Made by a program: the position numbers and the translations under genes. The notes under the pieces are model-generated. The model saw only the letters and a list, made by a program, of their open reading frames with translations, was not told where the DNA came from and did no database searches. Shown in pieces: positions 4,298 through 54,285 of a stretch of 64,000 nt of DNA. The stretch comes from Macrostomum lignano. Taxonomy: Eukaryota. The stretch's first letter is position 1; each line of letters opens with the position of its first letter. The stretch lies in assembly GCA_002269645.1 (NCBI GenBank), contig NIVC01002196.1:62001-126000 (forward strand), read 5' to 3'.

Positions 4298-19141
<14,844 letters not shown>

Positions 19142-25193: not shown

Positions 25194-25514
25194 AATTCAG
25201 ATATTCATTCATAAAACCTTAAAGACACGCACAAGCCGTGGCCTTTCTGCCTGTTATAACTAAACCCGCGGTTTCAACTGAGACGTTGAAAAAAAGCGCG
25301 AGAAAATAGGCTACCTGGCTGCATCCTTCTTCGCCACTGTCAATATTAAAGGTTACCGGCACAATTGTCCTCATATTCCACGGCTATTCAAGTCTGCCGT
25401 CTCTCCTCCCCTTCCGCTGTCAGGATCTGAGAGCTACAGCCGATACAAAAGCACAGTTTAACCACAACAGGAACCAAGCTGGCAACCTGGTTAGCAGCGC
25501 TCACGCCTTTGGCG

Positions 25515-26010: not shown

Positions 26011-26982
26011 GTGAGATACTTAACAATTATTGATATTCCAGGCATAGTTTTTTAAATATGCATTTTCATCTGCTTTAGCATTTCCTGCATGGGTCGGTCC
26101 TATACCTATACTGAGCCTATACTGAGGTAAACAGCTGACAGCCGCTAACCCACCCCATAGCGGCTTAACCTGTACCGAACTGTGTTGCAGCCTAGCTCTT
26201 AGATTCCAGTCGGAGCGCAGCCGTTGCTAGCTTGACATTTTAGCAATCGAGCTATTAAAAAGTGGAGAGAACGGCTGGCACAGTATAAGATAGCTGGATG
26301 AGAGCTGCTCGATCCCATTCTGTGTCAATAGAAGACAGTGCCAGGGACAGAAAGACAGACCAGTGGATTTAAAAGCTTCGTCTGCGAGAGCCGAAGCACG
26401 CGCGGAATCAATTTCCTGAAACTGCTACACTGCATGGGCTTGGCCTGGTCTAAAAAAGTTGTATTTTTTAGCTAGAGAACAGCACAGGCAACTGCAGTTC
26501 AGAAGAACGATAGGGGAATGCAAACGATTCGGTGGTGGGGGGAGAGGTAATTTGCGCTGACGATTTCCTGTATAATTATGAGCTATCCGTCTGCAATGAC
26601 TGAATTTGGGGTTCTATTTGAATTTGTAATGATATGCAATAGTTATCTAGATAGAATGTGCTGCAAAAATGATTCTCTTTTTATCACACAAGCAGAGGGG
26701 CTGTTGAAACAAAAAAACTGCTTTTGTTATCTTCTGCCTAGCTTTGCTAACTAACACTGGGGCCTCTTGCTCTCCATCTCATTCCCGTTGCTGAGCAGAC
26801 AATATGCTCAGCTGTTTACAACCTCTTGCCTATTTATCAGTTTTTTTTCTCTTTCTCTCTTCGCATTCCAAATTTGGATGTACAAGGTTTCTCTCTTATG
26901 AAAAGTATGCGGGCATTAGAAAGGTATGCAAGGTAGGTTTCACATTGCAAACTAATATGGCTACTATTCGATGACCATATAA

Positions 26983-27603
<621 letters not shown>

Positions 27604-28548: not shown

Positions 28549-31340
28549 GCTCCAGTGATTAGAGCTCCAGTGACTGGAGCTCCAGTGATTAGAGCTCCAG
28601 TGATTAGAGCTCCAGTGATTAGAGTTCCATTGATTAGAGTTCCATTGATTAGAGCTCCAGTGATTAGAGCTCCAGTGATTAGAGCTCCAGTGATTAGAGC
28701 TCCAGTGATTAGAGCTCCAGTGATTAGAGCTTTAGTGATTAGAGCTCCAGTGATTAGAGCTTTAGTGATTAGAGCTCCAGTGATTAGAGCTCCAGTGATT
28801 AGAGCTTTAGTGATTAGAGCTCCAGTGATTAGAGTTCCAGTGATTAGAGCTCCAGTGATTAGAGCTCCAGTGATTAGAGCTCCAGTGATTAGAGCTTTAG
28901 TGATTAGAGCTCCAGTGATTAGAGCTTTAGTGATTAGAGCTCCAGTGATTAGAGTTCCAGTGATTAGAGCTCCAGTGATTAGAGTTCCAGTGATTAGAGC
29001 TCCAGTGATTAGAGCTCCAGTGATTAGAGCTCCAGTGATTAGAGCTTTAGTGATTAGAGCTCCAGTGATTAGAGCTTTAGTGATTAGAGCTCCAGTGATT
29101 AGAGTTCCATTGATTAGAGCTCCATTGATTAGAGCTCCAGTGATTAGAGCTCCATTGATTAGAGCTCCAGTGATTAGAGCTCCAGTGATTAGAGCTTTAG
29201 TGATTAGAGCTCCAGTGATTAGAGCTTTAGTGATTAGAGCTTTAGTGATTAGAGCTCCAGTGATTAGAGCTTTAGTGATTAGAGCTCCAGTGACTGGAGC
29301 TCCAGTGATTAGAGCTCCAGTGATTAGAGTTCCAGTGATTAGAGCTCCAGTGATTAGAGTTCCAGTGATTAGAGCTCCAGTGATTAGAGCTCCAGTGATT
29401 AGAGCTTTAGTGATTAGAGCTCCAGTGATTAGAGCTTTAGTGATTAGAGCTCCAGTGATTAGAGCTCCAGTGATTAGAGTTCCAGTGATTAGAGCTCCAG
29501 TGATTAGAGCTCCAGTGATTAGAGCTTTAGTGATTAGAGCTCCAGTGATTAGAGCTCCAGTGATTAGAGCTCCAGTGATTAGAGCTCCAGTGATTAGAGC
29601 TCCAGTGATTAGAGCTCCAGTGATTAGAGCTCCAGTGATTAGAGCTCCAGTGATTAGAGCTTTAGTGATTAGAGCTCCAGTGATTAGAGCTCCAGTGATT
29701 AGAGCTCCAGTGATTAGAGCTCCAGTGATTAGAGCTCCAGTGATTTGAGCTCCAGTAATTAGAATTCCAGTGATTAGAGCTCCAGTGATTAGAGTTCCAG
29801 TGATTAGAGCTCCAGTGATTAGAGCTCCAGTGATTAGAGCTCCAGTGATTAGAGCTCCAGTGATTAGAGCTCCAGTGATTAGAGCTTTAGTGATTAGAGC
29901 TCCAGTGATTAGAGCTTTAGTGATTAGAGCTCCAGTGATTAGAGTTCCATTGATTAGAGCTCCATTGATTAGAGCTCCAGTGATTAGAGCTCCAGTGATT
30001 AGAGCTCCAGTGATTAGAGCTCCAGTGATTAGAGCTTTAGTGATTAGAGCTCCAGTGATTAGAGCTTTAGTGATTAGAGCTCCAGTGATTAGAGTTCCAG
30101 TGATTAGAGCTCCAGTGATTAGAGTTCCAGTGATTAGAGCTCCAGTGATTAGAGTTCCAGTGATTAGAGCTCCAGTGATTAGAGCTCCAGTGATTAGAGT
30201 TCCAGTGATTAGAGCTCCAGTGATTAGAGCTCCAGTGATTAGAGCTCCATTGATTAGAGCTCCAGTGATTAGAGCTCCAGTGATTAGAGCTTTAGTGATT
30301 AGAGCTCCAGTGATTAGAGCTTTAGTGATTAGAGCTCCAGTGATTAGAGTTCCATTGATTAGAGCTCCATTGATTAGAGCTCCAGTGATTAGAGCTCCAG
30401 TGATTAGAGCTCCAGTGATTAGAGCTCCAGTGATTAGAGCTTTAGTGATTAGAGCTCCAGTGATTAGAGCTTTAGTGATTAGAGCTCCAGTGATTAGAGT
30501 TCCAGTGATTAGAGCTCCAGTGATTAGAGTTCCAGTGATTAGAGCTCCAGTGATTAGAGTTCCAGTGATTAGAGCTCCAGTGATTAGAGCTCCAGTGATT
30601 AGAGCTTTAGTGATTAGAGCTCCAGTGATTAGAGCTTTAGTGATTAGAGCTCCAGTGATTAGAGCTCCAGTAATTAGAGTTCCAGTGATTAGAGCTCCAG
30701 TGATTAGAGCTCCAGTGATTAGAGCTTTAGTGATTAGAGCTCCAGTGATTAGAGCTCCAGTGATTAGAGCTTTAGTGATTAGAGCTCCAGTGATTAGAGC
30801 TCCAGTGATTAGAGCTCCAGTGATTAGAGCTTCAGTGATTAGAGCTCCAGTGATTAGAGCTCCAGTGATTAGAGCTCCAGTGATTAGAGCTCCAGTGATT
30901 AGAGCTCCAGTGATTTGAGCTCCAGTAATTAGAATTCCAGTGATTAGAGCTCCAGTGATTTGAGCTTTAGTGATTAGAGCTCCAGTGATTAGAGCTCCAG
31001 TAATTAGAGTTCCAGTGATTAGAGCTCCAGTGATTAGAGCTCCAGTGATTAGAGCTTTAGTGATTAGAGCTCCAGTGATTAGAGCTCCAGTGATTAGAGC
31101 TTTAGTGATTAGAGCTCCAGTGATTAGAGCTCCAGTGATTAGAGCTCCAGTGATTAGAGCTTCAGTGATTAGAGCTTTAGTGATTAGAGCTCCAGTGATT
31201 AGAGCTCCAGTGATTAGAGCTCCAGTGATTAGAGCTCCAGTGATTTGAGCTCCAGTAATTAGAATTCCAGTGATTAGAGCTCCAGTGATTTGAGCTCCAG
31301 TAATTAGAATTCCAGTGATTAGAGCTCCAGTGATTAGAGC
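28549..31340. repeat. 15-bp satellite (AGAGCTCCAGTGATT), about 186 units, fused to a SINE
   Basis: Direct; produces the IRAPV ORFs. The last unit runs straight into GTCGGACTCTCACG of the SINE head. Confidence 0.97.
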
Positions 31341-33327: not shown

Positions 33328-33930
33328 GACTGACTGAGATAAAAGCGGATGGACCAGAACTGACTGAGATAAAAGCGGATGGACCAGAACTGACTGAGAT
33401 AAAAGCGGATGGACCAGAACTGACTGAGATAAAAGCGGATGGACCAGAACTGACTGAGATAAAAGCGGATGGACCAGAACTGACTGAGATAAAAGCGGAT
33501 GGACCAGAACTGACTGAGATAAAAGCGGATGGACCAGAACTGACTGACTGAGATAAAAGCGGATGGACCAGAACTGACTGAGATAAAAGCGGATGGACCA
33601 GAACTGACTGAGATAAAAGCGGATGGACCAGAACTGACTGAGATAAAAGCGGATGGACCAGAACTGACTGAGATAAAAGCGGATGGACCAGAACTGACTG
33701 AGATAAAAGCGGATGGACCAGAACTGACTGAGATAAAAGCGGATGGACCAGAACTGACTGAGATAAAAGCGGATGGACCAGAACTGACTGAGATAAAAGC
33801 GGATGGACCAGAATTGACTGAGATAAAAGCGGATGGACCAGAATTGACTGAGATAAAAGCGGATGAACCAGAATTGACTGAGATAAAAGCGGATGGACCA
33901 GAATTGACTGAGATAAAAGCGGATGAACCA
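33328..33930. repeat. 30-bp minisatellite (TGACTGAGATAAAAGCGGATGGACCAGAAC)
   Basis: Direct; one unit has an extra TGAC. Confidence 0.97.
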
Positions 33931-34844
33931 GGCTTGTACGAGCGTAGAACTCCAATAGGACTGGTAGAATATGTAACATTCGTTATTGGAAAAATATGCT
34001 TCGAAACTTAGATCAGAAAGCCCATCTGCATCGGGGGTGACTGTTCAGTAACAGCACACTTTCTCCTCTCTCTCTCTACGCAGTGCTCTGGGAGATCATT
34101 TTTGATAACTCTGCCACCCGGTTCACCCTGCCAAAACCATCGACAGCCAAACTAGTTGGGTGCTCACTAGTGAGGGGGTAATAGGTGACAGTTGCTGCAG
34201 AAGTGTTGTGGGAAAATTCCAACCCGAATCTAGTTCCTCTTCCTGCTAGTCTGCGTTTTTCTATCCCTTCTTCCCGTTCCTCTTCCATCCTGGCAATTCC
34301 CCTCCCAGTGCGCTCGCGGTTCAGACCAGCGACAGTTTCCCAATTTGCATGAAGCTGGGAGTGGAGGGAGCTGAGGTGGTGGCCGGATTGGCGGCAGCCC
34401 CCTTTTGGCTGGCTCTCTCTGCCCTCCCCCGTTACAGCGATCCTGTATTTTTCCCACGTGGCCCCCTCCCGATGCCTTCCTCTCCTCGATCTTCCGCGGA
34501 CCCGGCATGGCTACGGCAGTGGCAGCGGCAGGCAGCAGCGGTTTGGCCAGCTGAAGCCAATTCTTGATTCCTGGGCCCGTATCCCCAGGTTTCTCTGGCC
34601 TTTTCGTGTGAGATAGCAGTCCAGCACTAAAGGAATTTACAACTGGCCAGCGAAAGCGCCAAATACCTCAGCTAACTGGTTCCAGTCTGAATCTTTTGCG
34701 TTGCCGTAGGTTGATTCACAGCAGAAGTTCAACAACAGCCATCAGTATACTGGAAAACAGGGCGAGTAGCTGCGGGATTGGCAGCATCCACGCAGCGAGA
34801 TGCCCTAGCCTGCTATGGGTGAGTGCGACTGCATTATTCGGCTT

Positions 34845-35225: not shown

Positions 35226-37637
35226 CTTCCAGCATGAAAGACTACTGGAGAACACAGTGGTTTGTTTGATGACTTGAGTTTCTGGCCTACTGGATGACTT
35301 GCCGCCATGCTCAATGATTTTCTGTTAGAATAGCCGACATCTACAGACTGATTGATCGATTTATCTAAAAATCTGCGAGTCCAAGTCAAACAATTGATGT
35401 TTATGTCAATCACTTTTCTCTCATCATATTCTCTCTGATATGCATTACTTTCAGTAGTAGATCTTGAGCAGCGAACTCAGCGGCTCAGTGCAAAGCGTAA
35501 GCTGTAGGGCCACGGACTAAAATCTGCTAAATTTATCTAATCAGATTTGGACAGCAATCCTTCTATCGGGAAAAACCCTCTTAAGATCGGCATGAGAGAG
35601 CCGGGGAGAAACCTCTAAACATCGAAGGATGTTGACTGCTATTTTTAGAATCAATCTTTTACACTGACCGCCTGCCGGCTAAGCCGAAATAGGTGCACTT
35701 TTATTTACTAGCCTGCCCAGCTTCTGTGCCGTGCCCTCCGCATCGCTCTGCTATTTAAAAATCTGTGGGTGGCCTTTTTATTGAAAAGATTTTCCACCTT
35801 AGGACTCGCTGGGCAAAAATGATTCCAATACGAGAATTTTTTTTGTTAAATTGGGTGAAAGCAAAATCTGATGTTGTCTTATGAATCTCGTGTCGCGGCC
35901 TTGCATTTAAACATTTCTTTCGGGGTTAGCATCTCCTAGCAGTAAAAAACCAATAAGCTAGTTTAATGCAAACATTGACTGTTGGCATAGTAAAACAATC
36001 GATAACTGAAAGGCGTTCATCTGCGTCCATTTATAATCAAAGCAGAATAACTTTTCTTATTTCTACCGGCTTCAGACAGTCGCTTAGCAATCATAAGCTT
36101 CAATTCGCCATTAGTAATACATTGTTGGCCTGGCACAACAGCGGCGCCGCGCTCCACCGATCACAGCACCATCAAATCGGCTTTGTATAGCGGAGCAACT
36201 CCGGGATTGAGTCTAGGCTTGTCTTGGCGCCTCAGGCTTAATTTGTCTGCTTCTGGAATGCACAGACTTACTATTTTTCTTCTTTCCACCCCGGAGAAGC
36301 CCCGAGCCGCCCCTTCCAACTGATCAAGCGCCTGATTGGATTGGGGCAGCTAAAATGGGACGAAGATTCTGAGGACTTCGAGGAACCAACGGGCCCAATA
36401 CAGCCAGCAGGCGTTGGGTGGAAACGGAATTTTACTTGGGACGAGGGCCGTATCAGTTCCCCCCTTCCTGCTCAATTTCTCTTCCTCACAGTCTTCGCGG
36501 CCCCTGCTGGAGGATCCGCGCCAGAAAGGAGGCGGAAGACTTCCAGGAGGCTATGGTTGATCTAGATTTGCATATTTGAGAAAAAAGACACACGAGAGAG
36601 GCAGGGGGAAGGCGCACTCCCAAGTTCACTGTCGCTCCCGGGTCTCGGTTTTTCTTTCTTCTCCTACGAGTAAGACACGCCCCCCGGCCTCAACTAAGCC
36701 ACGCGCTGAGCACATGGAGAAATACGCTGGGAAAAGGGAAGGGGAGCCCAATGAAGCTATTTACTCTCTCTTTCTGTCTCTGTGCGCAGGCGGAAGAGAA
36801 GCTAGCTGGGACACACACACTTCACGAGCCCTCCTCCCCTCACTATAATTTCCTTCGGATAGCGCTTCCTTCTCAGCCTTTCTCTCCCTTCCTTCCCGTT
36901 TTTTAACCAAACTCTGCCCCTAAGTCCCTGCGGTAGCCGTCAGCCAACCCCAGCCCCTTTGCACAGATGGGCCCGAACCAGTAACCTACCCCATTACAAA
37001 ACCCCGCGTCACTATACGCTACAGCCCGCGACTCTGAGCAAATCTTACAAACACACTCTTTCTCGCCTCTCTACTAATAGCTGTCAATAACAATCGATTC
37101 GAGGCTGAGGCGGCATCTTGGTGCAAGGTCCTGTTGAAGCCTCCCTTCTCGTTTTCTTTGCGCGAGCCGCCGCTGCCGTCCGATTCCTAATCACTCTGCT
37201 CCCCCGACGCTTGTTTGGTTGGCCCTCGCCCCCGCTTCACCCTTACCGTTCGCCAAACGTCCCTGCCCCTCTGACCCGAGGCGAGGTTGTTTAAGTCGAT
37301 CCGTGTTTTCAAAATCAACAACTATCGAAGAGAGCAAACGAAAGAATACAGCGCTGCTAGAGAAATCAGAGTCGGTTTGACGGGAATAAAAAAGTGGAAG
37401 ACGGTGCGGCAATTTGCCTCGGCTTGCAGTGCCATGGGCTAAAGGAAGTTTCAGGCCTCAGTACTACACCATTGCCACTTTAATGATCCGACTGTCAGAC
37501 GAACACGACAGCAAGCTAATGAGCGATTGAGCGGCAATTAAAAGTGCTCAAAGCACTCTACAGATGTGGGAGTTCAAGGCAAAACAAGCAGAAGCCGAAG
37601 CAGCAGAAACAACAACAACAACAGCCAAAGACTCGGC

Positions 37638-37786
37638 ATGAACCTTAACCACCTCATCTCGGGTGGCAGGCACGAGAGCGGAGCCTCCCGAGGCGGCCAG
37701 TCGCAGTCCGAGCATCACCGCTTCGTCCGGCACGAGTCGCGGCCCAGCTGCTCAGACACGGTGTTTGAATCGGCTGCAGATGACAG
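37638..37786 (+). CDS. Candidate alternative N-terminal exon A of the Kv1 gene (MNLNHLISGG..ADDR)
   Basis: Upstream acceptor ctacag| at 37564, ATG at 37638, donor AG|gtagga in phase 2 matching the acceptor at 43462. Inference; no transcript evidence. Confidence 0.45.
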
Positions 37787-37960
37787 GTAGGACAGCCGGG
37801 CATCTGTTACCCGTTCGGCTGTCAGAGTTTGCCAGACCGCAGATCTTTTCTAAACTTTAACAAACATGTAACTAGGAAGTTGAATCGACTGAACCCACAA
37901 GTTCAAACAACAATGACTTGACGTCTCAATCACATCGCCCCTAGACATTATATCCCACTA

Positions 37961-38157
37961 GAATAATTTGTGTCCTTGAGCAAGACACTTAACTCTGCAT
38001 TGCTTCAGTTCAACCAGCTGTAAAATGGGTGCCAGCATTAGCTGGGGTAATTGATGGTGTGTGTGGCGACCCCCAGTCTTTGGACTGAACAGCCGTACGC
38101 AGCCTTCAGATGCGCCGCGCAATAGCTGCGACTGAGCTGTCGGTTGCACATCTGGCC
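37961..38157 (+). mobile_element. CORE-type SINE, copy 4 (5'-truncated)
   Basis: Starts at TGTGTCCTTGAGCAAGACACTTAAC and follows the same body as the other copies. Confidence 0.87.
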
Positions 38158-39462
38158 ATTAGGGCAGTTATAATAGTCTGCCACACAAACTTTTCAACCC
38201 TTTGAAGTCTTTCAAGTTTTACAGTCCCTATCACACACGATTCAGTTATGGGGACTTTGAAATACAATTTGTCTTCTAAGGCTCCATACGCTCGTAGAAA
38301 GATAAAAAAATTCACATAGGGCCTACTTACTGAGTAGAATAACTGGTGATTTTCAATACTGGTATGAACAAATTTTTAATTTAGAGGAGAAAAATAAATT
38401 AAATTTTCAACTGATCCTGCGCTGGAGCGATTCCATTGCTAGGACAGTTCTATTGTTTATAAAGCCTTGTTTACGCTTTGAGTTGTTTACAAAGGAATCA
38501 TTAGATGTAGAAATACTTAGAGTTGGCTGATACTCGGGCACATAATCTACTCGCGTAGATTGTAGTCAAGAAGAGCTGAAGAAGATTGAAATTAAAGTCG
38601 TCAGAAATGAGCTCGCATGCCAAACTGCCCCGGTGGTGGAGAATTAATCCGCAGCCCTTGCCCCACCCCACCGGAAAAGCGGCGGGGTCAAACACATTCC
38701 CCGTTCTGATTGCAACAACGCTTTGCTTTGCTTTCAGTGCCGGGGAAGCCGCTTCTACGAGTATTAAGTATTGAGCATTGGCTCTCTGACCCCTCTGTAG
38801 CTGCTACAGTTTCGCGTACTCCCCGGCATGGCCTTCTCCCCTCTTGATTCCCTTTCTGGCTGGCTCGACAGTCGCGTCCGTGAGTGGGTGGGTGAGCAGC
38901 TTTCGGGCTTGGCAGAGCGCGGGGGTGTCGCAGCGGCTTTGCTGATTTTCTGGTTTCCTCCTTCGCTCGTACAAGCTGCGCCCCAGACTTCACTGGCCCG
39001 AGTGAAATAATTCGCGCAGTAAATGCAATTGCGCCAATGTAATGCGCACAATGGGACCCTTGCGCACCCGAAAATTTTCTCAACTAACACACCCTGACTG
39101 TGGCTGTATGCAGCAAGTGGGGAATATGTAGGAGCACACGTGTGCCTTTGCGAGGATATTCTGCACAGAGGGGATCGGCAAGGTGCCGGTAGTCCAACTG
39201 CGCCGCTAAGCTCCCCTCTGAGAGCGGCCCCCGCACTGGTAGGGGTAAGCAATAATTTCCATTCCCACCTCCTCACTATAAACCGCCTCTTCTGCCAGAA
39301 AGAAAAATGTAACAAGCCGAGAAAACTTAGACAAACATATCGATAGACAGAGAGAGCGACAGCGACTCCCAATGGCCTAAGTTTGAACTACTCGCCCACT
39401 CACGACTCGTTGATCGGAAACAATATACAAAATGCCATGACTCCCTGACAGCTCTGGCTGCC

Positions 39463-39740
39463 ATGCACAGTCATGATGTTTATTACAGCCCTAGGCTTAA
39501 TCCGGCCAACAGCTCTCAATACCGTACTCATCGACCTCGGCGTCATGAGCACCAGCGCCAGCACCAGCAACATCAGCTTCATCAGCAACAAAATCTTCAT
39601 CTGGCACCTAATTTCAGACGGTCCCCAGCTCGCACCTGCGGCGGTCTGCTGGGCAACGCTGAAGAGCTACCGGACAACGCAGAGGCCTCTGGTGAGAGAC
39701 TGCAACAAGTCCGGAGGCAGCACCAGCTGCTCCGAGAGCA
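39463..39740 (+). CDS. Candidate alternative N-terminal exon B of the Kv1 gene (MHSHDVYY..LLRE; internal acceptor possible at 39619)
   Basis: Open frame ending at a strong donor CA|gtaagt in phase 2, compatible with the acceptor at 43462. Inference. Confidence 0.5.
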
Positions 39741-40929
39741 GTAAGTGATGCCTGGTTTCTGACCCCGCGTCTGTGCTCCACATGCACTGAGTTAATTTCC
39801 TATAATAGATCGCATATTGCAGCAATGGTCACATTTTACAGCATCATTTGATTCCTACCCAAACTATACCCGACATTGGTTTGGATACCTTAATCCTCTT
39901 CAATATCCGTTAAAAATAGACGCCTGTTTCTCAGATTACCTCTCTTAAGTCTACTTTATACTTGATGTATCTTCACACAATGGGCACTCTTCGTACAATC
40001 AGCCCTTTCAGCTGTCGAAATAGGACCACTTTGCGTGGGCTGGTTCCTAACTACTGTACAATGTCATACAGTAAGGGAGATACAACTGTAGGGGATATTG
40101 GTAGGCGCTCCTAATGTTACAGTTTTTCTAATGACCACATAGCAGCATTTGCATCGCGTATTTGGGTGCCTGCTACACAGAAATTGTGTGTCACCCAGCC
40201 TTCCTTTCCTCGCTTTTCCCCATACATGCAACCGCAGAGTCTAAAACAATTCCGGGTGTGAGTTAAGAGCACAGAAACTGCGGGCCACGAGAGAAAGAGA
40301 GGGGGCGAGGAGGGAGATGGGCGGGTCCTGAGCAAAGCAGAGGCCATGAATAATGCAGCCGCACTGAGCAAGAACTCTAAGGTGAGGAATCAACTGCGTG
40401 TTTAGCCTGTATGCCTTCTCGGTGCGTTGGAATCGCCTCGGCCTTGCCTAAAATGCTGGATCCCGAGGATGGTGCGCGAAGATGCTGCGAAAACCAGCCT
40501 GATTTGCTGGGAGAAATCTGTACCAGATGGACAGGGTAGCTAAATTATGCTTCATTGCCGCTCCACGATTCAACCGACCCAGTGGAGCGTGACAGCGTTC
40601 TCGGCAAATAAACTTTTACTCATCAAGGAAGTTAGAGCTCATATGTTTAGAGTCGATTCGAACTGCTCATCGATATGGCTGCGACGATTGTATCGGCAAT
40701 GCTTGAAGGAATGTGAGTTGCTTCCGTCGCGGTGCGCGCGAGGACGTTGAAAAAGATTTTTATGGCTACCTACCATCGAGTGTTTAAAGGGAACTCTTTT
40801 AAAAAAATAGGCTACAGACTAAAGTACAGAGCTCAGCAGTTGGAAGTGCTATTGTTGCGCAACAAGTTTTGTTCCCGTTTGCCTGGATAGCATCAGCGCA
40901 TGATCCTCAATTAGTGATAGCTCTCACTT

Positions 40930-41943
40930 AGACCCAAACTGTGACACTTCCCTTCTAGACCCATCCTGTGACACTTCCTTTCTAAACCCATCCTGTGACC
41001 CTTCCTTTCTAGGCCCAACCTGCAACACTTCCCCTCTAGATCCAGCCTGTGACACTTCCCCTCTAGACAAACCTATGACACTTCCCCTCTAGACCCAACC
41101 TGTGACACTTCCCTTCTAGACCCATCCTGTGACACTTCCTTTCTAAACCCATCCTGTGACCCTTCCCTTCTAAACCCATCCTGTGACACTTCCTTTCTAG
41201 GCCCAACCTGCAACACTTCCCCTCTAGATCCAGCCTGTGACACTTCCCCTCTAGACAAACCTATGACACTTCCCTTCTAGACCCAGCCTGTGACCCTTCC
41301 CTTCTAAACCCATCCTGTGACACTTCCTTTCTAGGCCCAACCTGCAACACTTCCCTCTAGATCCAGCCTGTGACACTTCCCCTCTAGACAAACCTATGAC
41401 ACTTCCCCTCTAGACCCAACCTGTGACACTTCCCTTCTAGACCCAGCCTGTGACCCTTCCCTTCTAGACCCAGCCTGTGACACTTCCCCTCTAGACCCAG
41501 CCTGTGACACTTCCCTTCCAGACCCAACCTGTGACACTTCCCTTCTAGACCCAACCTGTGACACTTCCCTTCCAGACCCAACCTTGTGACACTTCCCTTC
41601 CAGACCCAACCTGTGACACTTCCCTTCTAGACCCAACCTGTGACACTTCCCTTCTAGACCTAACCTGTGACACTTCCCTTCCAGACCCAACCTTGTGACA
41701 CTTCCCTTCCAGACCCAACCTGTGACACTTCCCTTCTAGACCTAACCTGTGACACTTCCCTTCTAGACCCAGCCTGTGACACTGCTCTTCTAGACCCATC
41801 CTGTGACACTGCCCTTCTAGACCCATCCTGTGACACTTCCCCTCTAGACCCAGCCTGTGACACTTTCCTTCTAAACCCAAACTGTGACACTTCCCTTCTA
41901 GACCCAGCCTGCAACACTTCCCCTCTAGACCCAACCTGTGACT
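40930..41943. repeat. 27-bp minisatellite (CTGTGACACTTCCCTTCTAGACCCAAC)
   Basis: Direct; produces the GLEGKCHRL ORFs. Confidence 0.96.
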
Positions 41944-43351
41944 GTTAAAATAATAATCCTGCCTTTGAATAGGAATTCTAGCCAATACAGCTTTGTAAAT
42001 TTGGTGCTAGGTTTTGATGTACATTTAACAAGACGACAGGAGCAACTATACACATATTTGAGAGCAGCCGTGCCTAGAGTTGTTTGCTGAGCAGAGAGGA
42101 ACAAATGAAAAATATTGGTGGATGAGAATGGATTCAGAGCCAAGCTCTTTTAGAATGTAGCCTGTTGACTCACGCAGTGTGTTTCAGTTTCAGCTGCAGT
42201 CTAAACCCACCACCTCCGCCCCCCCTGCGCATACGCTCGTAGCTACCCCAAATGCAACCGCTGCAGTATGGCTCATCGCCCAGTTCCAGAGAATGTGAAA
42301 GGTTGGGAAATGGAGGCAGGGAGGGAGGCAGCAATCCCATTACCCTAGCTATTCCATTGTGATCCCAGAGTGGCTCCTTCACCCGCTCACGGCCTTTACT
42401 GCATCCAAAGAGAGGGAGAGTGGGAGAGATTGCCTATGAGAATGTGGATGGAGGGGGTGCATTGGATTGCATTGGATTCTTTAACGCGCCAAATTCAGGA
42501 ATTAGCTATGTACTTCTCGCCACGGTCTCGGGAGGGGGGCAGCCCGGGTTGACAGGAAGGATTTGAAACAGGAATTGGGAGACGATGCAGAGAGAGCGAT
42601 GGTGTTGAGAGCAAGAATAGGTGGTGGCTGCACTGAATCGACGGGCGCAAGGGTCCTCTACCATTGGCTAGGGCTCCCCCCGTAAATGCTTAGTTGTTTG
42701 GAGGATCCAAACTCAGTAGTTTGATGGGCCTGAGAATTCGCTCTGACAAATTCCTATCCTAGCCACCGTTCCTCTTCCTCTCTCGCTCCTCTCTCTTTCT
42801 TTCTCTTCATCAACAGTCGCGCTTCTCATTTTGGCTTTCCCTCCCCAAAGCCATCTCAGAGCTGCGCCTAACTGTACAGGTCTTATCCCACAAAAGCCCC
42901 ACCTCAGGATCTATTCCCTCATCGCTCACTCCCTGCTTCCCTCCCTCACTCTGCAGCAGCCATCAGCAACCATCCGAGTGCCATCAACCGCGCCCACCCC
43001 TGCGCCCAGTCCCGTGCATCAAATCCAGCCAACCTCGTACAAGAGTGAGGGAGCAGGAGAGGGAGGATGAAGTAATAAAGAATTGCTGCGAAATAGAGAC
43101 AGGAAAGAGGGAGACGAGAGACAGCTATCATAGCCTGGCCTCGCCAGCTGTTGCCCCAGCCGTCTTTGTCAGAACAAGAGACTTCTCAATCTGAGCCGCC
43201 CGACAGTCAAGACGAAATCCTCGGATACCTTCCAGCTTCCCTTGGTTCAAGGGGCCGAGGGAGTCTAATGCAGGGCGGCGACTTCCCTGTCTGACCTGTT
43301 CTCCCTGCCTCACTTGTTCACTCCACTCTCTGTGTGAGCCGGCCCGCCGCC

Positions 43352-44970
43352 ATGGAGGTGGCCATGGCAGGCATCGAGCAGGGGAACGGTGGCCCCGGCA
43401 GCTACATGGGCCAGCGTGGCAGAGTCAGCGAACTAGCCCACCTGCATGTGCCCTATTCCAGGTCTTTTCCAAAAATGACGGAGGACACGAGCCAGCAGCA
43501 TCAACAACAACTGATGCTGGACCGCGAGGACAATCGTTCGGCATTCGACTACGACTGCGAGCGTGTGGTCATCAATGTCAGCGGGCTGCGCTTTGAAACG
43601 CAGCTGAAGACACTCAATCAGTTCCCGGACACTCTACTGGGCAACTCGCAGAAGCGCAATCGTTACTACGACCCTCTACGCAACGAATACTTCTTCGACC
43701 GTAATCGGCCGTCATTCGACGCCATTCTGTACTTTTATCAGAGCGGCGGGCGACTAAGAAGGCCAGTCAACGTTCCAATTGACGTTTTCTCGGAGGAGAT
43801 TCGGTTCTACGAGCTTGGAGAAGAGGCCATCGAAAAGTACCGCGACGATGAAGGCTTTATTAAAGAGGAGGTGAAGGTACTACCGAGAACGAGTTCCAAC
43901 GCAAGGTTTGGTTGCTTTTCGAATACCCCAGAGCTCCATGGCAGCTCGTGTTATTGCCATTATTTCAGTGTGCGTCATCCTGCTCAGCATAGTAATTTTC
44001 TGCGTGGAAACGCTGCCTCACTTCCGACGCTACAAGGTTGTCAACAGTAGCTTTGGTAATACCACGTATGGCCAGGTAATCGAGGAGGACGACATACCGC
44101 AGTTTGGCGAGCCTTCTTCATCATAGAGACCATCTGCATAGTATGGTTCACCTTCGAGCTGATGGTTCGGTTCGCGTCCTCACCGGAGAAACTTGGCTTT
44201 TTTAAGAACATAATGAACTCCATCGATATCGTAGCCATCATTCCCTACTTCATCACGCTGGGCACGGTGATTGCCGATGACAGCCGCAGTAACCAAGCAA
44301 TGTCACTGGCCATCCTCCGGGTGATTCGGCTTGTCCGCGTTTTTCGCATCTTCAAGCTCAGCCGACACTTCAAAGGCCTGCAGATTCTCGGCCAGACGCT
44401 TAAAGCTTCCGTTCGAGAGCTGGGCCTCCTGGTGTTCTCTTATTCATCAGCGTGATTCTGTTCTCCTCAGCCGTCTACTTCGCCGAAGCGGACTCTACGA
44501 AGTCGCATTTTGACTCCATCCCGTCGGCATTCTGGTGGCAGTAGTAACCATGACGACAGTAGGCTACGGCGACATGCGCCCCGTAACCGTCTGGGGCAAG
44601 CTAGTAGGCTCCTTGTGCGCCATCGCAGGCGTCCTGACGATTGCCCTGCCCGTACCCGTCATCGTGTCCAACTTCAACTACTTCTATCACCGGGAGACGG
44701 AGTCGGAGGACAAACAGACCTACGTGCATGTGCAGTCCTGCCCTCCTACAGAGACGGCGGTAAGAAGAACTCGCTGGTGTCTGCCAGCCGAGTGTCGGAG
44801 GCCTCCGAGGTGGACCTGGCCACGGAGGGACACTTCCTCATGCAGGATCAGCCGCAGCAGCAGGCGAGTAATCAAAGCACGAAACAGAACCACGCAGGCA
44901 AGCTGCAGGCGCCCAACAGAATTCTTCCAGCAGGGGCAACACAACAGCATGCTTTGAGACAGACGTCTGA
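43352..44970 (+). CDS. Sh: Shaker/Kv1 voltage-gated K+ channel with an intronless core; this copy has 5 clear and 2 inferred single-base deletions (sequence error or pseudogene)
   Basis: Kozak gccgccATGG at 43352; T1 domain ([36 protein letters not shown]); S4 [19 protein letters not shown]; pore TMTTVGYGD; S6 [11 protein letters not shown]; terminal ETDV-TGA at 44970. Confidence 0.95.
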
Positions 44971-47900
44971 CCTCTGGCTTAAGCAGCTTCCGCCAACCTG
45001 TCCTCTTCCCTTCCACACGCCTACTCGGCTCTTCCTGCAGTACGTGGGGACTGTACATACATACAGGTGAGTTGCTATCTTTCGTTATGATTTAAAGTTG
45101 TTAAGTTTTTAATAGTTTTTAAGCTTTATAATAACGTACATTTTTGCCAAAATGGAACAAAGTAAACGATGCAGCATGCATAACTATTGTGACTGTATTG
45201 TAGTTAGACATCGAAATTAAACAGCCCAATCGAAAGCTCATTGTTGGCTCGCTTTAGCCTATGGTCTAGCAGGCAGAATTGATGCAAAAATCCCGTAAAC
45301 GCAAACTAGATACCTGTACTTTTAGTACGGGCAATGTCGGGTACTCGACTACATAGTATACTGTACTCAAGTGCATTCATCCACATTTGCATGCGAACTA
45401 ATGTGCTCATTTGTATTCCCCTTCAAGAATTCTTGTGCTTTAATGATTTGGTGGAATGAAGGGCGATGCTGAATAATTAAGAATAAGCCGGAGGAAGAAT
45501 GTGGGAAATGGGAAGCCGGGAGAGGCAGGGAGCGGGGAAGAATAGATATACTAAAAATAAATACGCCCAGCAACCGCCAACTTTTGCATCCAGCGCATCC
45601 AGGGAGCAGAGCAGAGAGCTGGCTACAGTGAGGGACCAGGATGTACTGGGTGGCTAACTTTCATTATAAATTCAGCCAATCCCGGAAGTGCCAGCTATTC
45701 ACTGTAAAAATAATGAGCACCAAAGTCCCAAACCGGCTCCAGCGCAGGAAGTGTGGCCTAGGCCTACAGTCCCAGCCTCAAGTGCAAACAGAGGGGTGCT
45801 CACTCAGTCACTCACGCTGGGAGGCGCGGCTAAGTGTGAAGGCTAGTTTCCTCTTTAAATATGAGCCTTACTTCATCAAAACTTCGTATAAAACACATGC
45901 ATAAATACAAGTCCATGCAGCTTCAGATATGTGAGGGTGAAGGGGGGGTTAAAACTTTGGTCCCCGGCAGGCCCTGAGGGCGCAGAGACCTTTGCTGAAA
46001 TAACCTGGGTGCGTGTGCGATAGTGTCAGAAAAAATGAGCATACGAGGAGACTGCCTGCCCCCCCCTCACTAGCTGAATTCTCCTGAGAATACTCGGCGC
46101 CCCTGTTCTGTTCCGGCTCTCCCCCATCCTCACAACACGTACTCAATTTTTCTTACGCACTTATCTCGACTTTCACTTTTGCCGCTCGCATCCAGCTTTT
46201 GTTTCCTATCGTCCCTCCCCTCGTTCACGATCTGTAACTATTGCAGCAGTATTATATATTATTTTGCCGCAAAAACTTATATTTTTACATTCGACGCTTT
46301 AGTTGCCATAATCCCCAAGGCAACGGCGCTATATATGTATTGTAGTGATCATATTCCGAGTAAGCAGCAAGGAGCAAGGAGCGAGTACTTATCGAGATGA
46401 ATTCATGACGGCTGTCCGTAGAAACGCCTTTCTGCCATTTATTGATAAAAGCAGGCTAAAAAGGTTGGCCTGATTCTTTCCGGAGGGGTCAATACTGACC
46501 TGGGGGGTCCCAGATTTGACATGCAACTGGCGCATTTAGCGTCCATGCTAAGTGTACTCTGCTACTCACATGAGCCGGCCTTATCACCATCTCTCTTCCC
46601 CATCTCTTTTTCAATCGATTTTTTCTCCCTCGAAACTTCCGCTTTTCATTCCATCTAATCCTCACTGCCTCTCTCTCTTAATCTCTCTTCCTGCTCCCCG
46701 GTTTCTCTCCTTGCAGTTGTGTGCAAACTTTGCTGCCAGTAGCTGGTCCCTGGCGATACGCGTGCGCCCTGAGGTTTGGGCTGTCATAGACGGCGCATGA
46801 TTAGAATTGGGTGCTGTATTGGGCGACAGCTGCGCAGATGCCTGTCACAGGGGAGCCAGCAGTTTCTGTCCAAAGCCCACTAGCTCTGCTTGGCGAATGA
46901 TTCCTAGTTAGTAACTTGCTCGCTGTTTGGTCTCCCTGGGAATAGACTTGTAAACGCGATTTGCTTGTCTAAGTCCATCTATAGAATACTAATTTGTGCA
47001 AAAAGCAAATCCACGGATTTCTATTCCGCCTAGGCCTCCGAGTGCATATGATTAAAATTGATGACCAGATTCTTTACAATTAGCTATTCCAAAGCATGCT
47101 CAGAAATTTCCCCATTCAATTTAGTCTTTGAAGGCGATTCTATTCAAACTTAATATCCAGATTTTTGCGTAGACTTAGATGGCAACTTAATGCACGTTTC
47201 TACATCCCATTGTTGAAATTAAATTTTATGAGTAACAGCTAAGAAGCCATGCACGCGAAAGTGAAATTATTATAGAACTAATAATGTACTTTCACCGTAA
47301 ATTCATCGAGGTCTTTTTATCTCTTTTTAATCAACGGTTCTTTACAGCTTCTAGTTAGATGATAAGGAAGTCGAGAAAATCAGGGCCACCGTATACCCTG
47401 TGTGAGTGTGTTGATCGTAGCCAAATGCCCACTGGTATTAAGTAAACTCAATCTACTAGAAATGACCCGTACAGCATGTTTCTTTGAGCTCGACAGAGCG
47501 GAAAAGTGCACTGGAGCCATCTGCAAGCGAAAGCAATTCAGTAATTCGACATCCACAACTCTTTAATAATTTTAGATACACCCGATAAGCCCCCCGAGGC
47601 CGATCAAACACCAGTTCGTGTATCGCGAACAGCCAATCGACAGCTGCAGCTCACAGGGCCCAGCCTGTCCAAGTACCTGTCTTGGCGTCCGGTACATGGG
47701 TCTGCTGCACTTCATTCTGCAGTCGGTCGGTCCGATTCACCCTCGGTTCTTTCAAGTAACAAGCAAAATGCAGCGCGGCACACAGAGAAAATTTTGGTTG
47801 TTCAAGAAGATTCCCAACGAATTAAGAGTTTGAAGAGGGACGTACGTGAATTATTTGGGGAAAAACTCTGCGTCGCTGCGTACCTGAACGAAACGATAAG

Positions 47901-48939
47901 GTTAGACTGGAAAACTATATAGCTCGTAGTTTCTGCAACAGAAATTCGAGTTTTGTTTCTTGGAATTTCTCGAATACATTTTTGGAGCAAATAAACCATA
48001 GCTGGGTGTATAAACGAATATATGTCTCTGTGGTGGCATGTAAAATCATAATTTGGGTCTAGAATAAATTAATTCGTCAACCCAAACAAAGTTAGTTACT
48101 GGGTCCTTCACTGATACCCAACAGAAGCCAAATAACCGTCCATGTTGGCAGCGACACAGTCGGTAGAGATAAATATTCGATACTTCACACAAGTAACGTA
48201 TTAAACAAAACTGCCTATTAAGCTTTATCTTGCACGTTTTGTAAAAATGAACTATTAATTATTCCTCTCGATCTGATTATCAACGATTTTCTGAAGCGTT
48301 GCAACCCTGTGCGTTCTTAGAGAATCCGCTTGGAATGCATAAAGCTTTCTTAGCTCGCTAACACAGGCCCGAGCAGATTGAGCAGCTACACATCTCTTCT
48401 ATGTTCGTGATTTATTTTAAAGCCTTGAAAGAATTGCTTCTAGCAAAGTTGTCTATTTCTTTTTTCCTGGCTTCCCGACCCTTAATTAGGGCTTGCTGTG
48501 TAATGGATTGTTAGACAACATTTAGAAACAATTATGTAATGCAATTTGTAGGAAATTATTCGCTATCACTTATTGTGACTGGTTAATGCTGCTGTCATCA
48601 TGCAGGCATTAGTTAAAGAATTAGCGTTAGTATGAATAGGTAACTTGCATTTGGGTTCCAACATTCACTTGATTCGTTTTTTCAACTAGCTAGCTTAAAA
48701 AATCTCAAACTACCGAATCGCCGGGTTTTGTTTGCTTATTCAGAACAGGTCCTGCAGTAAAAAACTGCGTTTAGTCTGTCACATCGCGGGCAAGAAATTT
48801 TCTACCTCGGTGCTTATGTTAGTTTCATTTGATTTCCTCCTTAATTTTATGCTACCCCTTGAAATTCCTTAAATTAAAGAGTAGCCCCTGCTGAACAAAC
48901 ATGCCTATGATATGGTTTCACTTGGTGTACACTGTTCTC

Positions 48940-50487: not shown

Positions 50488-53400
50488 TCAGGCTGCGCGC
50501 TGGCTGGCTTTAGTCTTCGCGTTTCTCTCCACCGCATAGTTGACCAGCACCCTGCAGCGGAATTTGGTTGGAATTTGGTTGGGATTAGGCCAGGATTAGC
50601 TCGGGATTAGGTTGTGATTAGTTTGTGATTGTTTGGACTTAGGTTGCGATTAGGTCGGAATTAGGGTTGGATTAGGTTGGGATTAGCGAGAGAATAGGTT
50701 GGGATTAGGTTGGGATTAGGGTGGAATTAGGTTGGGATTAGGCTGGGATTAGTTCGGAATTAGGGTGGAATTAGGTTGGGATTAGGTTGGGATTAGGTTG
50801 AGATTAGATTGGGATTAAGTTAGGATTAGGTTGGGATTAGGTTGGGATTAGGTTGGGATTAGGCTGGGATTAGTTCGGAATTAGGGTGGAATTAGGTTGG
50901 GATTAGGTTGGGATTAGGTTGAGATTAGATTGGGATTAAGTTAGGATTAGGTTGGGATTAGGTTGGGATTAGGTTGGGATTAGGTTGGGATTAGAGTGGG
51001 ATTAGGGTGGAATTAGATTGAGAGTCAAGGTGGTTATGTACAGCCTGCTAGTCTATTTAAATGCAGCTCTCCAAAAGCAATAAAGTTTCAACTGATGAAA
51101 ACAAATAAACAATAAACTTACTCTGCTTCCTTTCGGTGGTGTTTCTGCAAGGTGAAAAGGGATGAGTGCAAATGTGACATATTCAGGTAAAACTCAATTA
51201 AGAATACAGACGTAGCAAATTAGTTGTAGCGACCAATTATATTTCAGGAGTGAAAGATGCAGAAAACGAGATTTACCTCCTTTAGCTTCTTAATCATGCG
51301 AGTCTGCTCCCGCTCGCCGATCTCAATCTTCTGCGGCCCGCCGGTCGGCTTGCTACCCTCGATGCTGTCCTTCAGGCTATGCCGCGTTATCAGGCGGTGC
51401 TTGTTCTCCTCCATGATGCGACGCGGCAGCTTATAGATTGGGTTCTGATAGATGAGTCGGTGTCGGAGCGATACCACGTGCTCCTCGTTGTCCATCCGGC
51501 GCTTGTAGCGTCTGCCGTAGCGGCTGGCGAAGGGCTCCTGCACCCGGTAGCGGCTGTGCGGCTTCACCCGGGTGCGCTTCGGCCAGCGGTTCACCTCGCG
51601 CTCAACAAACTTGCCATCCTGTTTGACAGGTTAGATTGGGGGTGCGGATGACATGCTCAATGACAACTGATATGGTAAGAAATCGACGATCTCGCGATCA
51701 GGATGTTGCACAGAGAAAGTTCTCTGAGGTCACCTGGCTGCAACAACTGCAGAAACGTTGTTCAACAACAGCTTGACTAGTCGCTACCATGAACTACGTA
51801 AAGACCTCATAAAGATTTGAAAATTAACTAGCAATCTGCACCCCCGTTCAGAGACAACAAAGAAAGAAATAAAAATGTTTGAGTTAACTACACGTAGGAA
51901 TTATGACCTTCTGCAGTCACCATTGATAATTTCTTAGGGGAAAACGATTCTTTAAGCAAAAAAAGCGTTCAATTCGATTGACTGCTCACACCCGCACTAT
52001 CATACACTTCGCTAGAGAGTGCAAGCAATAATCGACATAGGCGTAGGAACGTTTCAAAAAGTGGGGGGGGGCAGGTTCAGTGGCATATTTGAGGGGGGGG
52101 GGCGCACAGGGCGCACGCACCCGTCGAGTTTAGATTTTTTATATGGAAAATGCACATTACGCTCGTATCATGTACCGATTATTTTCAGAATCCATTTTGT
52201 CACCACTCATTTTATAAAGCGCCGCAAGCACTCATTTTAGCGCCGCAGGTACTCATTTTAGCGCCGCAGGTACTCATTTTAGCGCCGCAGGTACTCATTT
52301 TAGCGCCCAGGCACTCATTTTGGCGCCGCAGGCACTCATTTTAGCGCCACAGACACTCATTTTAGCGCCACAGACACTCATTTTAGCGCCACAGACACTC
52401 ATTTTAGCGCCGCAGGCACTCATTTTAGCGCCCCAGGCACTCATTTTGGCGCCGCAGGCACTCATTTTGGCGCCGCAGGCACTCATTTTAGCGCCACAGA
52501 CACTCATTTTAGCGCCGCAGGCACTCATTTTAGCGCCCCAGGCACTCATTTTGGCGCCGCAGGCACTCATTTTGGCGCCGCAGGCACTCATTTTAGCGCC
52601 ACAGACACTCATTTTAGCGCCGCAGGCACTCATTTTAGCGCCCCAGGCACTCATTTTGGCGCCGCAGGCACTCATTTTGGCGCCGCAGGCACTCATTTTG
52701 GCGCCGCAGGCACTCATTTTAGCGCCACAGACACTCATTTTAGCGCCGCAGGCACTCATTTTAGCGCCGCAGGCACTCATTTTAGCGCCGCAGGCACTCA
52801 TTTTAGCGCCGCAGGCACTCATTTTGGCGCCGCAGGCACTCATTTTAGCGCCGCAGGCACTCATTTTGGCGCTGCAGGCACTCATTTTAGCGCCACAGAC
52901 ACTCATTTTAGCGCCGCAGGCACTCATTTTAGCGCCGCAGGCACTCATTTTAGCGCCGCAGGCACTCATTTTAGCGCCGCAGGCACTCATTTTGGCGCCG
53001 CAGGCACTCATTTTAGCGCCGCAGGCACTCATTTTGGCGCTGCAGGCACTCATTTTAGCGCCACAGACACTCATTTTGGCGCCGCAGGCACTCATTTTGG
53101 CGCTGCAGGCACTCATTTTAGCGCCACAGACACTCATTATGGCGCCGCAGGCACTCATTTTGGCGCCGCAGGCACTCATTTTAGCGCCGCAAGCACTCAT
53201 TTTAGCGCCGCAGGCACTCATTTTGGCGCTGCAGGCACTCATTTTAGCGCCACAGACACTCATTTTGGCGCCGCAGGCACTCATTTTGGCGCCGCAGGCA
53301 CTCATTTTGGCGCCGCAGGCACTCATTTTGGCGCCGCAGGCACTCATTTTAGCGCCACAGACACTCATTTTGGCGCCGCAGGCACTCATTTTGGCGCCGC

Positions 53401-54285
53401 AGGCACTCATTTTAGCGCTATTTTTGTCGGCCTGTAGCAAAATGCATTCATGCAAAGCAGCAAAAACAAAAATAAGCAAAAAGTCTACATTTTACATTTA
53501 AAATGTGGGGGGCCAGATACCATTACTGGCCTCACCATTTTAAAAAGTGGGGGTGCCATGGCCCCACTGTCCCACCCCCCTTCCTACGCCTATGATAATC
53601 AATAGAAATATAGTAACGGCTAAGTCAAATTGAAAAGCCATGAATCGGAAAGCCAGTAGTGAGAAGAAAGCCTGACCTGGTAGACAAAAGCGTATCTTGG
53701 CGGAAAAGCCACGATGTTGTCAGCCTGGCTACCTGAGACCTGAGACCCCTCGGCGCTGCCAGGCCTCTCGCCAACGCCGATGCTCAGACCGTCATCCCCG
53801 GCCGGCTTGCGCGGCCCGAAATGAAACCGCGGCCGGCGCTGCTGCCACAGCTCGAACCTGGCCATCTGGCGCTCTTTCTCGTCGGCGCTGATGCTGCCGG
53901 ACTCGTTGTGCTTCGCCTCCAGCCGGCACAGCGGCATCGATGTCGGAGCCAGTAGTTGATGCGATTCGGTTGACAAGGCCACCTCGGGCGTGTAGTTCTG
54001 ATTGCCGAGGTCCAGCAGTAGGCGGCAGTTGCTTCTGTTACTCAGGCCGCCTTTAACGTCTTCGTTGTTGACAAAGGCGGCAGCGGCCGCTGTGGCGACT
54101 GCTTCAAACGAGGATGTGGACGCTGAGCAGGCGTCATCATGATTCAGCATGTTGGCCTGTTTATTGTTGGCTAACGAGTCGGCTTGTTCATCTTTGGCTT
54201 GAAACAGGCGGAAAACCGTCCAAGGCTTGGATGACTTTAGTTGGTTGTCTTTAGTTGAGCTTCTGTTACGGCTGAAGAGTCCCAT
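50488..54285 (-). CDS. Four-exon gene of unknown function, about 345 aa, with a basic C-terminal half
   Basis: Exons 54285-53677 (donor CAG|gtcagg, phase 0), 51618-51277 (cag|GAT..GAG|gtaaat), 51144-51122 (cag|AAA..GA|gtaagt) and 50551-50488 (cag|G..TGA) join in frame. Minus-strand AATAAA at 50285-50280. No family recognised. Confidence 0.72.
50565..51020. repeat. 11-bp telomere-like minisatellite (TTAGGTTGGGA) in intron 50552-51121
   Basis: Direct. Confidence 0.92.
52036..53594. mobile_element. Non-autonomous hAT-like DNA transposon (MITE) with an internal 21-bp minisatellite
   Basis: Perfect 14-bp TIRs CATAGGCGTAGGAA (52036) and TTCCTACGCCTATG (53581). Flanks ATAATCGA and ATAATCAA form an 8-bp TSD with one mismatch; 8-bp TSDs are typical of hAT. 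Confidence 0.85.
52215..53420. repeat. 21-bp minisatellite (GCGCCGCAGGCACTCATTTTA) inside the MITE
   Basis: Direct; produces the APQALIL and MSACGAK ORFs. Confidence 0.97.

Follow-up and report, generated by a model that had tools for sequence, protein, structure and literature searches.

In insect Shaker genes (ShA, ShB, ShC, ShD and others), several ATG-bearing 5ʹ exons join the constant region directly before the sequence S[LFY]PK. The alternative Shaker N-termini reportedly set inactivation kinetics, in work from 1988 attributed to Schwarz, to Kamb and to Timpe. N-terminal swapping is the classic means of tuning Shaker channels between A-type and delayed-rectifier behaviour and is usually regarded as a speciality of flies or arthropods. 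Here we describe a Kv1/Shaker locus of the flatworm Macrostomum lignano contained in a window of 64,000 nucleotides (assembly Mlig_3_7, GCA_002269645.1, NIVC01002196.1:62001-126000; window position plus 62000 gives the contig position). Our overall reading, to which we assign a probability of roughly 0.7, is that the large Kv1 coding exon acts as a hybrid first and internal exon, onto which swappable N-termini can be spliced from further upstream.

Two other groups of described genes are relevant. Genes with the ancestral Kv1 N-type inactivation domain (Kv1AnID), which is defined by a ball motif with acidic residues at positions 2 and 9 (PMC3634772), include Aplysia AKv1 and vertebrate Kv1.4. 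Like the flatworm gene, these carry the ball motif (MEVAM..., E2, E9), a second block before the T1 domain and a coding sequence (CDS) in one exon (PMC3634772). The same source links complex alternative splicing of Kv1 to Ecdysozoa, which have lost such a ball according to Prince and Pfaffinger (PMC3634772), whereas other literature links it to protostomes generally. The second group consists of the mollusc Kv1 isoform sets in RefSeq (Mytilus, Mizuhopecten, Haliotis and Mya; XP_063398173-76 and others). These have the identical hybrid-exon design, with MEVAM contiguous with the core, an internal ttccag/GTC before S[FY]PK (a slash marks an exon boundary throughout), a MATLVSAILETL mini-exon with a phase-2 donor, and ball-less isoforms. 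Squid SqKv1A, SqKv1B and SqKv1D reportedly differ in their N-termini as well. The arrangement is of long standing and does not represent a novel type of system. The mollusc isoforms are in RefSeq already; our literature search found no description of the embedded acceptor or the mini-exon.

Three-frame translation of 43352-45070 reads a complete Kv1/Shaker protein, MEVAMAG...TVGYGD...ETDV, from one exon in which the frame shifts repeatedly. Its parts are as follows.

43352..43461, + strand: ball segment of 36 residues plus (R), the ancestral Kv1 N-type inactivation domain, with MEVAMAG start, joined directly to the core
43447..43462, + strand: internal 3ʹ splice site gccctattccag/G, embedded in the codons for P-Y-S-R; the exon opens at 43462 in phase 2
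43462..44970, + strand: common Kv1 core in a single exon, with SFPKM, T1 domain, S1-S6, pore TVGYGD and ETDV; stop codon at 44968-70

The frame-corrected protein of 540 amino acids was used as the query in a protein homology search. Its best M. lignano matches are 97% and 92% identical, and Kv1 channels from molluscs, annelids, nemerteans, brachiopods and insects are roughly 57-77% identical, the Kv1 orthologues among the best matches lying at about 70-73%. All of the best 120 matches are Kv1/Shaker proteins (57-97% identity, ranked by similarity without formal phylogeny), and the matched proteins all carry the T1, Ion_trans and Ion_trans_2 domains. Pfam families PF02214 (T1, BTB_2), PF00520 and PF07885 are found on two database proteins, P0001 and P0122, that are 97-100% identical to the frame-corrected protein, and PF02214 is also found on the truncated product annotated in the window. 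The Kv1 signatures seen in the three-frame translation and in an intact second genomic copy include a 17-residue S4 motif, the pore sequence TMTTVGYGD and a C-terminal ETDV. By these comparisons the locus is the M. lignano orthologue of the lophotrochozoan Kv1/Shaker gene. Unlike insect Shaker, the flatworm gene shows no additional coding intron within its core.

The ball begins with the ATG at 43352, and its N-terminus fits the pattern M-E-V-A-M-A-G-x-E-(x)-G-N-G-G-P with acidic E2 and E9 and can be aligned with those of six other species. The break defined by the internal acceptor falls between R36 and S37 (YSR/SFPKM). In other words, the sequence cctattccag/G lies inside the open reading frame (ORF) directly 5ʹ of SFPK, encoded as G TCT TTT CCA AAA, exactly where a phase-2 acceptor had been proposed in a reading made from the letters of the window without database searches (hereafter the sequence-only reading).

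Comparison of the acceptor codons across Macrostomum, Mytilus, Gigantopelta, Elysia, Capitella, Owenia and Tubulanus argues that this site is functional. The sequence TCC AGG TC is invariant in 7/7 orthologues from four phyla, in the codon context (A/T)AT TCC AGG TC. The mollusc and annelid check recommended in the sequence-only reading came out in its favour. In the same seven species the neighbouring codons (the preceding Pro and the following Ser, Phe or Tyr, Pro and Lys) are free at their synonymous sites. Because these neighbours vary, constraint on the protein cannot account for the invariant nucleotides, but a splice site can. CAG/GTC is also retained at the homologous site of an M. lignano paralogue. 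This conservation is far beyond chance, unlike the bare pattern of upstream ORFs followed by donors that is considered below.

The homologous site is used in other species. The MEVAM isoform of Mytilus trossulus is colinear with the core, while in RefSeq isoform X2 a 12-codon exon encoding MATLVSAILETL (donor TT/gtaagt) is spliced to ttccag/GTCTTATCC inside the reading frame, at a position and phase equal to those of flatworm 43462. Among the RefSeq isoforms of Mytilus, Mizuhopecten, Haliotis and Mya the N-terminus switches exactly before S[FY]PK, and the ball segment also runs without interruption into the core in Mytilus, Capitella, Tubulanus, Owenia and Elysia. The likeness to the Drosophila-type junction before SLPKL, which the sequence-only reading had drawn, also holds: Athalia isoforms X1-X8 (8/8) and other insect proteins diverge exactly before SLPKL, and Tribolium DNA reads ...tttttcttgttctag/G TCG CTG CCC AAG, a phase-2 junction (ag/G TCN) that matches the flatworm site in position and phase. 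The insect and flatworm genes differ in that SLPK of Tribolium is preceded by an ordinary intron, whereas in the flatworm the ball (MEVAMAG type, E2 and E9 present) continues directly into the core, with the acceptor located within the reading frame. An older Tribolium Shaker model (P0076) reads the polypyrimidine tract of this intron as the protein sequence GFGQFFANFSCSR before SLPKL, the real acceptor being ttctag/G. Taken together, the comparative data indicate that the acceptor at 43462 is a real and deeply conserved phase-2 3ʹ splice site.

The N-terminus with the best support as an alternative to the ball is encoded by a mini-exon located between the core and the exons discussed below.

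40675..40712, + strand: exon C, alternative first mini-exon, ATGGCTGCGACGATTGTATCGGCAATGCTTGAAGGAAT/gtgagt, encoding MAATIVSAMLEG(M), with a phase-2 donor

Its codons are ATG GCT GCG ACG ATT GTA TCG GCA ATG CTT GAA GGA AT/gtgagt. A search pattern for this mini-exon was built from mollusc RefSeq N-termini and scanned on both strands, and positions 40675-40712 are its single match in the whole window. Shuffled sequence is expected to yield 0.025 matches per 64 kb, and none that includes the GT (p<0.01). ATG-initiated, phase-2 counterparts lie upstream of Kv1 in Gigantopelta (MATLVSAILETL, as in Mytilus isoform X2) and Capitella (MATIVTSILDNM), and a further homologue upstream of Kv1 in Tubulanus (MASAIVSTILDNN) has the donor TT/gtaagt. 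The mini-exon is therefore conserved across four phyla, in a flatworm, molluscs, an annelid and a nemertean. A tblastn search of the window with N-terminal peptides from molluscs, a brachiopod, insects and a flatworm had returned low-complexity noise only, and exon C was found later by the short pattern. The sequence-only reading overlooked it. The intron directly downstream of exon C contains a 27-bp tandem repeat of about 38 units (40929-41942) whose copy number differs between genomic copies.

Further upstream lie the exons on which the sequence-only reading had been built.

37638..37786, + strand: exon A, candidate alternative first coding exon, encoding MNLNHLISGGRHESGASRGGQSQSEHHRFVRHESRPSCSDTVFESAADD plus AG, with phase-2 donor CAG/gtagga
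39463..39617, + strand: segment B1 (MHSHDV...APNF), an open frame 5ʹ of B2 with a (CAN)n-like His/Gln-rich stretch
39618..39740, + strand: exon B2, 123 nt, symmetric phase 2-2, acceptor tttcag/A, donor GCA/gtaagt, encoding (R)RSPARTCGGLLGNAEELPDNAEASGERLQQVRRQHQLLRE(Q)

The two phase-2 donors it had named, at 37786 and 39740, are present. The acceptor it had placed at 39619 to allow chaining of the exons exists too and the exon start is backed by two protein models, but the position was one base off, as 39618 is the first base of B2 and 39619 opens its first whole codon. B2 contains no ATG. There are two upstream exons with their own ATG and phase-2 donor, A and C, and one phase 2-2 cassette. 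The junctions at 37786, 39618-39740 and 43462 are all phase 2, and because every junction has this phase, every exon combination stays in frame.

Exon A has the codon usage of coding sequence in one frame only, with a log-likelihood ratio of 0.37 bits per codon that lies above all 499 stop-free null windows, and its GC content at third codon positions (GC3) is 0.78 compared with 0.71 for the Kv1 CDS. It is a plausible candidate for an alternative N-terminus (MNLNHL). Just 5ʹ of it, at 37564-37640, the sequence ctctacag/ATGTGG fits the spliced-leader acceptor motif and begins an upstream ORF of 25 codons. The stop codon of this ORF overlaps the start of MNLNHL (GCATGA), in an arrangement typical of termination-reinitiation. 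B2 also scores 0.37 bits per codon. A 91-amino-acid ORF beginning MMFITALGLIRP... lies at 39473-39748 (+) in the +1 frame over B1 and B2 and scores 0.29 bits per codon; no phase of this ORF fits the Kv1 core, and it has no Pfam match. Because an ORF incompatible with the core also looks coding here, the codon test is not clean in the CAN-rich stretch.

The third N-terminus proposed in the sequence-only reading, MHSHDV, was rejected as a start. B1 has a GC3 of 0.43 and a log-likelihood ratio of -0.22 bits per codon, which is the codon usage of non-coding sequence, and the models P0002 and P0123 both begin at the 39618 acceptor. B1 probably belongs to an intron or an outron rather than serving as a start exon. 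Of the three N-termini, the MEVAMAG ball is of the Kv1AnID type, MNLNHL is a plausible candidate that looks coding, although the searches found it in no transcript, model or homologue, and MHSHDV is probably wrong.

The 15.7 kb that separate Kv1 from an EGR-like zinc-finger gene (last ORF 26989-27603) contain exons A, B2 and C. A separate transcript for them, named as a possible refutation in the sequence-only reading, is not indicated because no other gene is called in this interval.

A mechanism can be proposed in which the large coding exon serves as both a first and an internal exon. An mRNA starting just 5ʹ of the ATG at 43352 would be read straight through, and the channel would keep the 15-residue motif of the ancestral ball and, by homology with Aplysia AKv1, might undergo N-type inactivation. 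A pre-mRNA starting further upstream would instead use the acceptor ttccag/G at 43462, and the 110-nt ball segment would be removed as the 3ʹ end of an intron. The 12-residue mini-exon C could then join the core (MAATIVSAMLEGM/SFPK), or exon A could do so with or without the 123-nt cassette B2 (MNLNHL...DDR[RSPARTC...REQ]SFPK). Alternatively, no new N-terminus would be added and translation would begin at M41 (MTEDTS). Products of exon joining would carry the peptides MAATIVSAMLEGMSFPK or ...AADDR(R)S. We infer that M. lignano transcribes exons A and C and translates them, and that inactivation differs among the isoforms that would result.

Partial evidence for the predicted junctions comes from M. 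lignano proteins in databases. P0002 and P0123, two UniProt models derived from the earlier ML2 assembly, begin with RSPARTC, the first whole codons after the 39618 acceptor, and continue as ...LLREQ/SFPKM, which corresponds to the junction 39740 to 43462. Both models pass the ETDV stop (window 44962-44970) through a putative donor GAC/gtctga into about 80 implausible residues, and P0001 and P0002 skip short coding stretches; these oddities look like model artefacts that bridge assembly errors.

Additional evidence comes from the paralogue Mlig009376g1 (P0005), whose transcript-based CDS runs from an ATG exon with a phase-2 donor through a 129-nt phase 2-2 exon to cttacag/G TCG. This acceptor also lies inside an exon, and the contiguous upstream frame, which is ball-like (MEFAMAG), reads MEFAMAGFGEMNGNP or MEFAMAGFGEMNGNPDACPPPHSYR. 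This layout is the one that the sequence-only reading proposed for exon A, B2 and the core. The paralogue differs in that SHHH replaces SFPK, the ball motif is degenerate and the upstream exons cannot be aligned to A or B2. BLASTP of the joined A and B2 peptides against the N-terminus of the paralogue detected no similarity outside the T1 domain, and no exon C-like sequence was found in Mlig009376g1.

Several observations weigh against the hybrid-exon reading. In this gene, junctions into 43462 are known from database models and not from reads, and P0002 and P0123 may be partly ab initio predictions. Protein searches found no M. lignano database protein in which the core follows exon A or C. 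The longest product annotated in GenBank is a ball-less protein of 499 amino acids. Exon A is without a homologue, as an exhaustive HMMER search against 1.84 billion representatives gave a single hit, a repetitive bacterial protein that is spurious. As an ORF followed by a donor it is weakly above chance: 18 ATG-initiated ORFs of at least 40 codons ending in phase 2 at GT[AG]AG or GTAGG occur in 128 kb (both strands counted), so that roughly 0.4 are expected in the 6 kb upstream of the core, compared with two seen. Finally, a second reading frame of B2 scores nearly as high on codon usage. A cluster look-up found no further M. lignano isoforms of the gene in the database. When exon A, exon B and the linker served as queries in a word-index protein search, the sole match was the truncated product of the window itself; this outcome is uninformative, as the same search also missed P0002 with 72 shared identical residues.

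The alternative that survives best, although we consider it unlikely, holds that the locus makes only two products, the MEVAMAG ball channel and the ball-less MTEDTS channel. The acceptors at 39618 and/or 43462 would then receive the spliced leader or non-coding 5ʹ exons, B2 would belong to the 5ʹ untranslated region, and A and B1 would be untranslated. Spliced-leader trans-splicing as a competing user of these acceptors had been overlooked in the sequence-only reading. About 30-39% of M. lignano genes are trans-spliced to a 35-nt leader ending in ATG according to the literature (CGGTCTCTTACTGCGAAGACTCAATTTATTGCATG), and the acceptor motif of this leader is [TC]TNCAG (PMC8629364). Both TTTCAG (39612-17) and TTCCAG (43456-61) fit the motif, which ordinary cis acceptors share. 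Joining the leader (...GCATG) to B2 would produce an in-frame TG/A stop followed by RSPARTC, precisely where P0002 and P0123 start, and, since B2 has no ATG, the first AUG would be that of MTEDTS, which is the GenBank start. The Mlig_3_7 annotation in GenBank was made from genome-guided transcripts that were split at sites of trans-splicing and poly(A) addition, and TransDecoder was used to call the ORFs. The locus tag Mlig000768g3 suggests a transcriptional unit that this pipeline cut at such sites. In both genomic copies the GenBank protein begins at MTEDTS (M41), so that the annotated product lacks the ball and gains no new N-terminus. Because MEVAMAG is open and in frame 123 nt upstream and yet is not used, the annotated mRNA is not colinear with the genome at its 5ʹ end, which counts in favour of the hybrid-exon reading as well. 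Mollusc RefSeq likewise lists ball-less isoforms that start at an internal Met.

Trans-splicing alone does not explain why exon C is kept as an ATG-initiated phase-2 mini-exon in four phyla and is coding in mollusc RefSeq. It also leaves aside the strong, frame-specific coding usage of exon A, the properties of B2 (a length of exactly 123 nt, an open frame and matching phases at either end), and the annotated CDS of the paralogue, which uses upstream coding exons. The annotated mRNA, which is probably the most abundant, may well encode a ball-less channel. Such a trans-spliced product is compatible with the hybrid-exon reading as an extra isoform, and it would be a full account of the locus only if neither exon A nor exon C were expressed.

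A second alternative is that the window copy is a decaying pseudogene with real frameshifts and that only a sister copy on NIVC01000568.1, which is about 98-99% identical to the window and encodes the intact protein PAA80734.1, is functional. Relative to this copy, the CDS in the window has six 1-bp deletions (after 43882, 43929, 44111, 44437, 44536 and 44740) and one 2-bp insertion at 44912-13, which break the frame and went unmentioned in the sequence-only reading. Because of them, only a truncated product of 191 amino acids is annotated in GenBank on the window copy. However, the six single-base changes are all deletions and fall mostly within short homopolymer runs, and the same type occurs about as often in the flanking non-coding DNA. 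The CDS carries only 4 substitutions in 1.5 kb, and its correct-frame segments contain no stop codon. Between the two copies there is no difference in the splice sites or in exons A, B2 and C. This pattern is the signature of an unpolished long-read consensus in a redundant assembly, and the frameshifts are probably consensus errors of this kind and not decay, which makes the pseudogene explanation improbable.

The divergence between the two copies is uneven. A 2.2-kb block (38505-40712) that holds B2 and exon C shows one substitution, compared with 1-2% divergence on either side (Fisher p=1.4e-7), which could reflect regulatory conservation or selection, or gene conversion. The 3ʹ flank (44971-48900) diverges by only about 0.1%.

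The last alternative is that the upstream pairs of ORFs and donors arise by chance and that the embedded AG is kept only through the peptide LPNSRSFPK of a simple single-exon gene. This we regard as very improbable: ORFs followed by phase-2 donors do occur at about 0.07 per kb per strand, Kv1AnID genes are published as simple single-exon genes (PMC3634772) and the identity of exon A between copies is not significant (0 substitutions compared with about 2.3 expected), but the synonymous choices AAT or TAT, TCC and AGG are fixed in 7/7 orthologues beside freely varying synonymous sites, both Mytilus and the M. lignano paralogue splice at the homologous site, the junction 39740 to 43462 appears in two models, and exon C fits a pattern defined in other phyla (p<0.01).

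With these alternatives weighed, the sequence-only reading is partly supported, and the hybrid-exon organization suggests a broader interpretation. It seems fairly likely that lophotrochozoan Kv1 genes called single-exon undergo alternative splicing at a 3ʹ splice site that lies within the CDS, that LPNSRSFPK is kept largely as that site, and that phase-2 swapping of the ball, including the MAT(L/I)VSxIL(E/D) mini-exon common to flatworms, molluscs, annelids and nemerteans, is at least as old as the protostome ancestor and did not originate in Ecdysozoa. LPNSRSFPK is presumably the second conserved block of PMC3634772. Whereas Kv1AnID genes are described there as structurally simple, this stretch in the flatworm coincides with a 3ʹ splice site that is conserved and used, and a conserved peptide block would find its explanation as a splice signal. 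A junction common in place and phase to insects and four lophotrochozoan phyla, hidden in an apparently intronless frame and accompanied by a conserved mini-exon, offers a testable ancestral design for the control of inactivation. Current M. lignano annotations of the gene, which give only a ball-less or truncated product, are incomplete, and the conserved isoforms are open to cloning and clamping in a transgenic flatworm model.

Some mollusc features have no flatworm equivalent, and vice versa. The long multi-exon N-terminus of mollusc Kv1 (PKDID...RIRRSKS...PLLGN...) has no counterpart detected in the flatworm window, and exons A and B2 have no mollusc homologue. The gene for U1 snRNP70 lies head-to-head directly upstream of MEVAM-type Kv1 in Mytilus, Capitella, Tubulanus, Owenia, Elysia and Gigantopelta, and in Mytilus the MATLV exon overlaps the 5ʹ end of snRNP70. 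Flatworm Kv1 is not so arranged, at least within the window, from which the snRNP70-Kv1 microsynteny is absent. The neighbouring genes in the window are instead the following.

11732-12310, - strand: diacylglycerol-kinase catalytic exon
15460-15864, + strand: cytosolic fatty-acid-binding protein
25509-27603, + strand: EGR-like protein with three C2H2 zinc fingers
60795-61292, + strand: family-C (mGluR-like) receptor, N-terminal ligand-binding region

Other large tandem arrays, with units of 15, 30, 21 and 15 bp, occupy 28549-31340, 33329-33931, 52218-53418 and 54511-57153.

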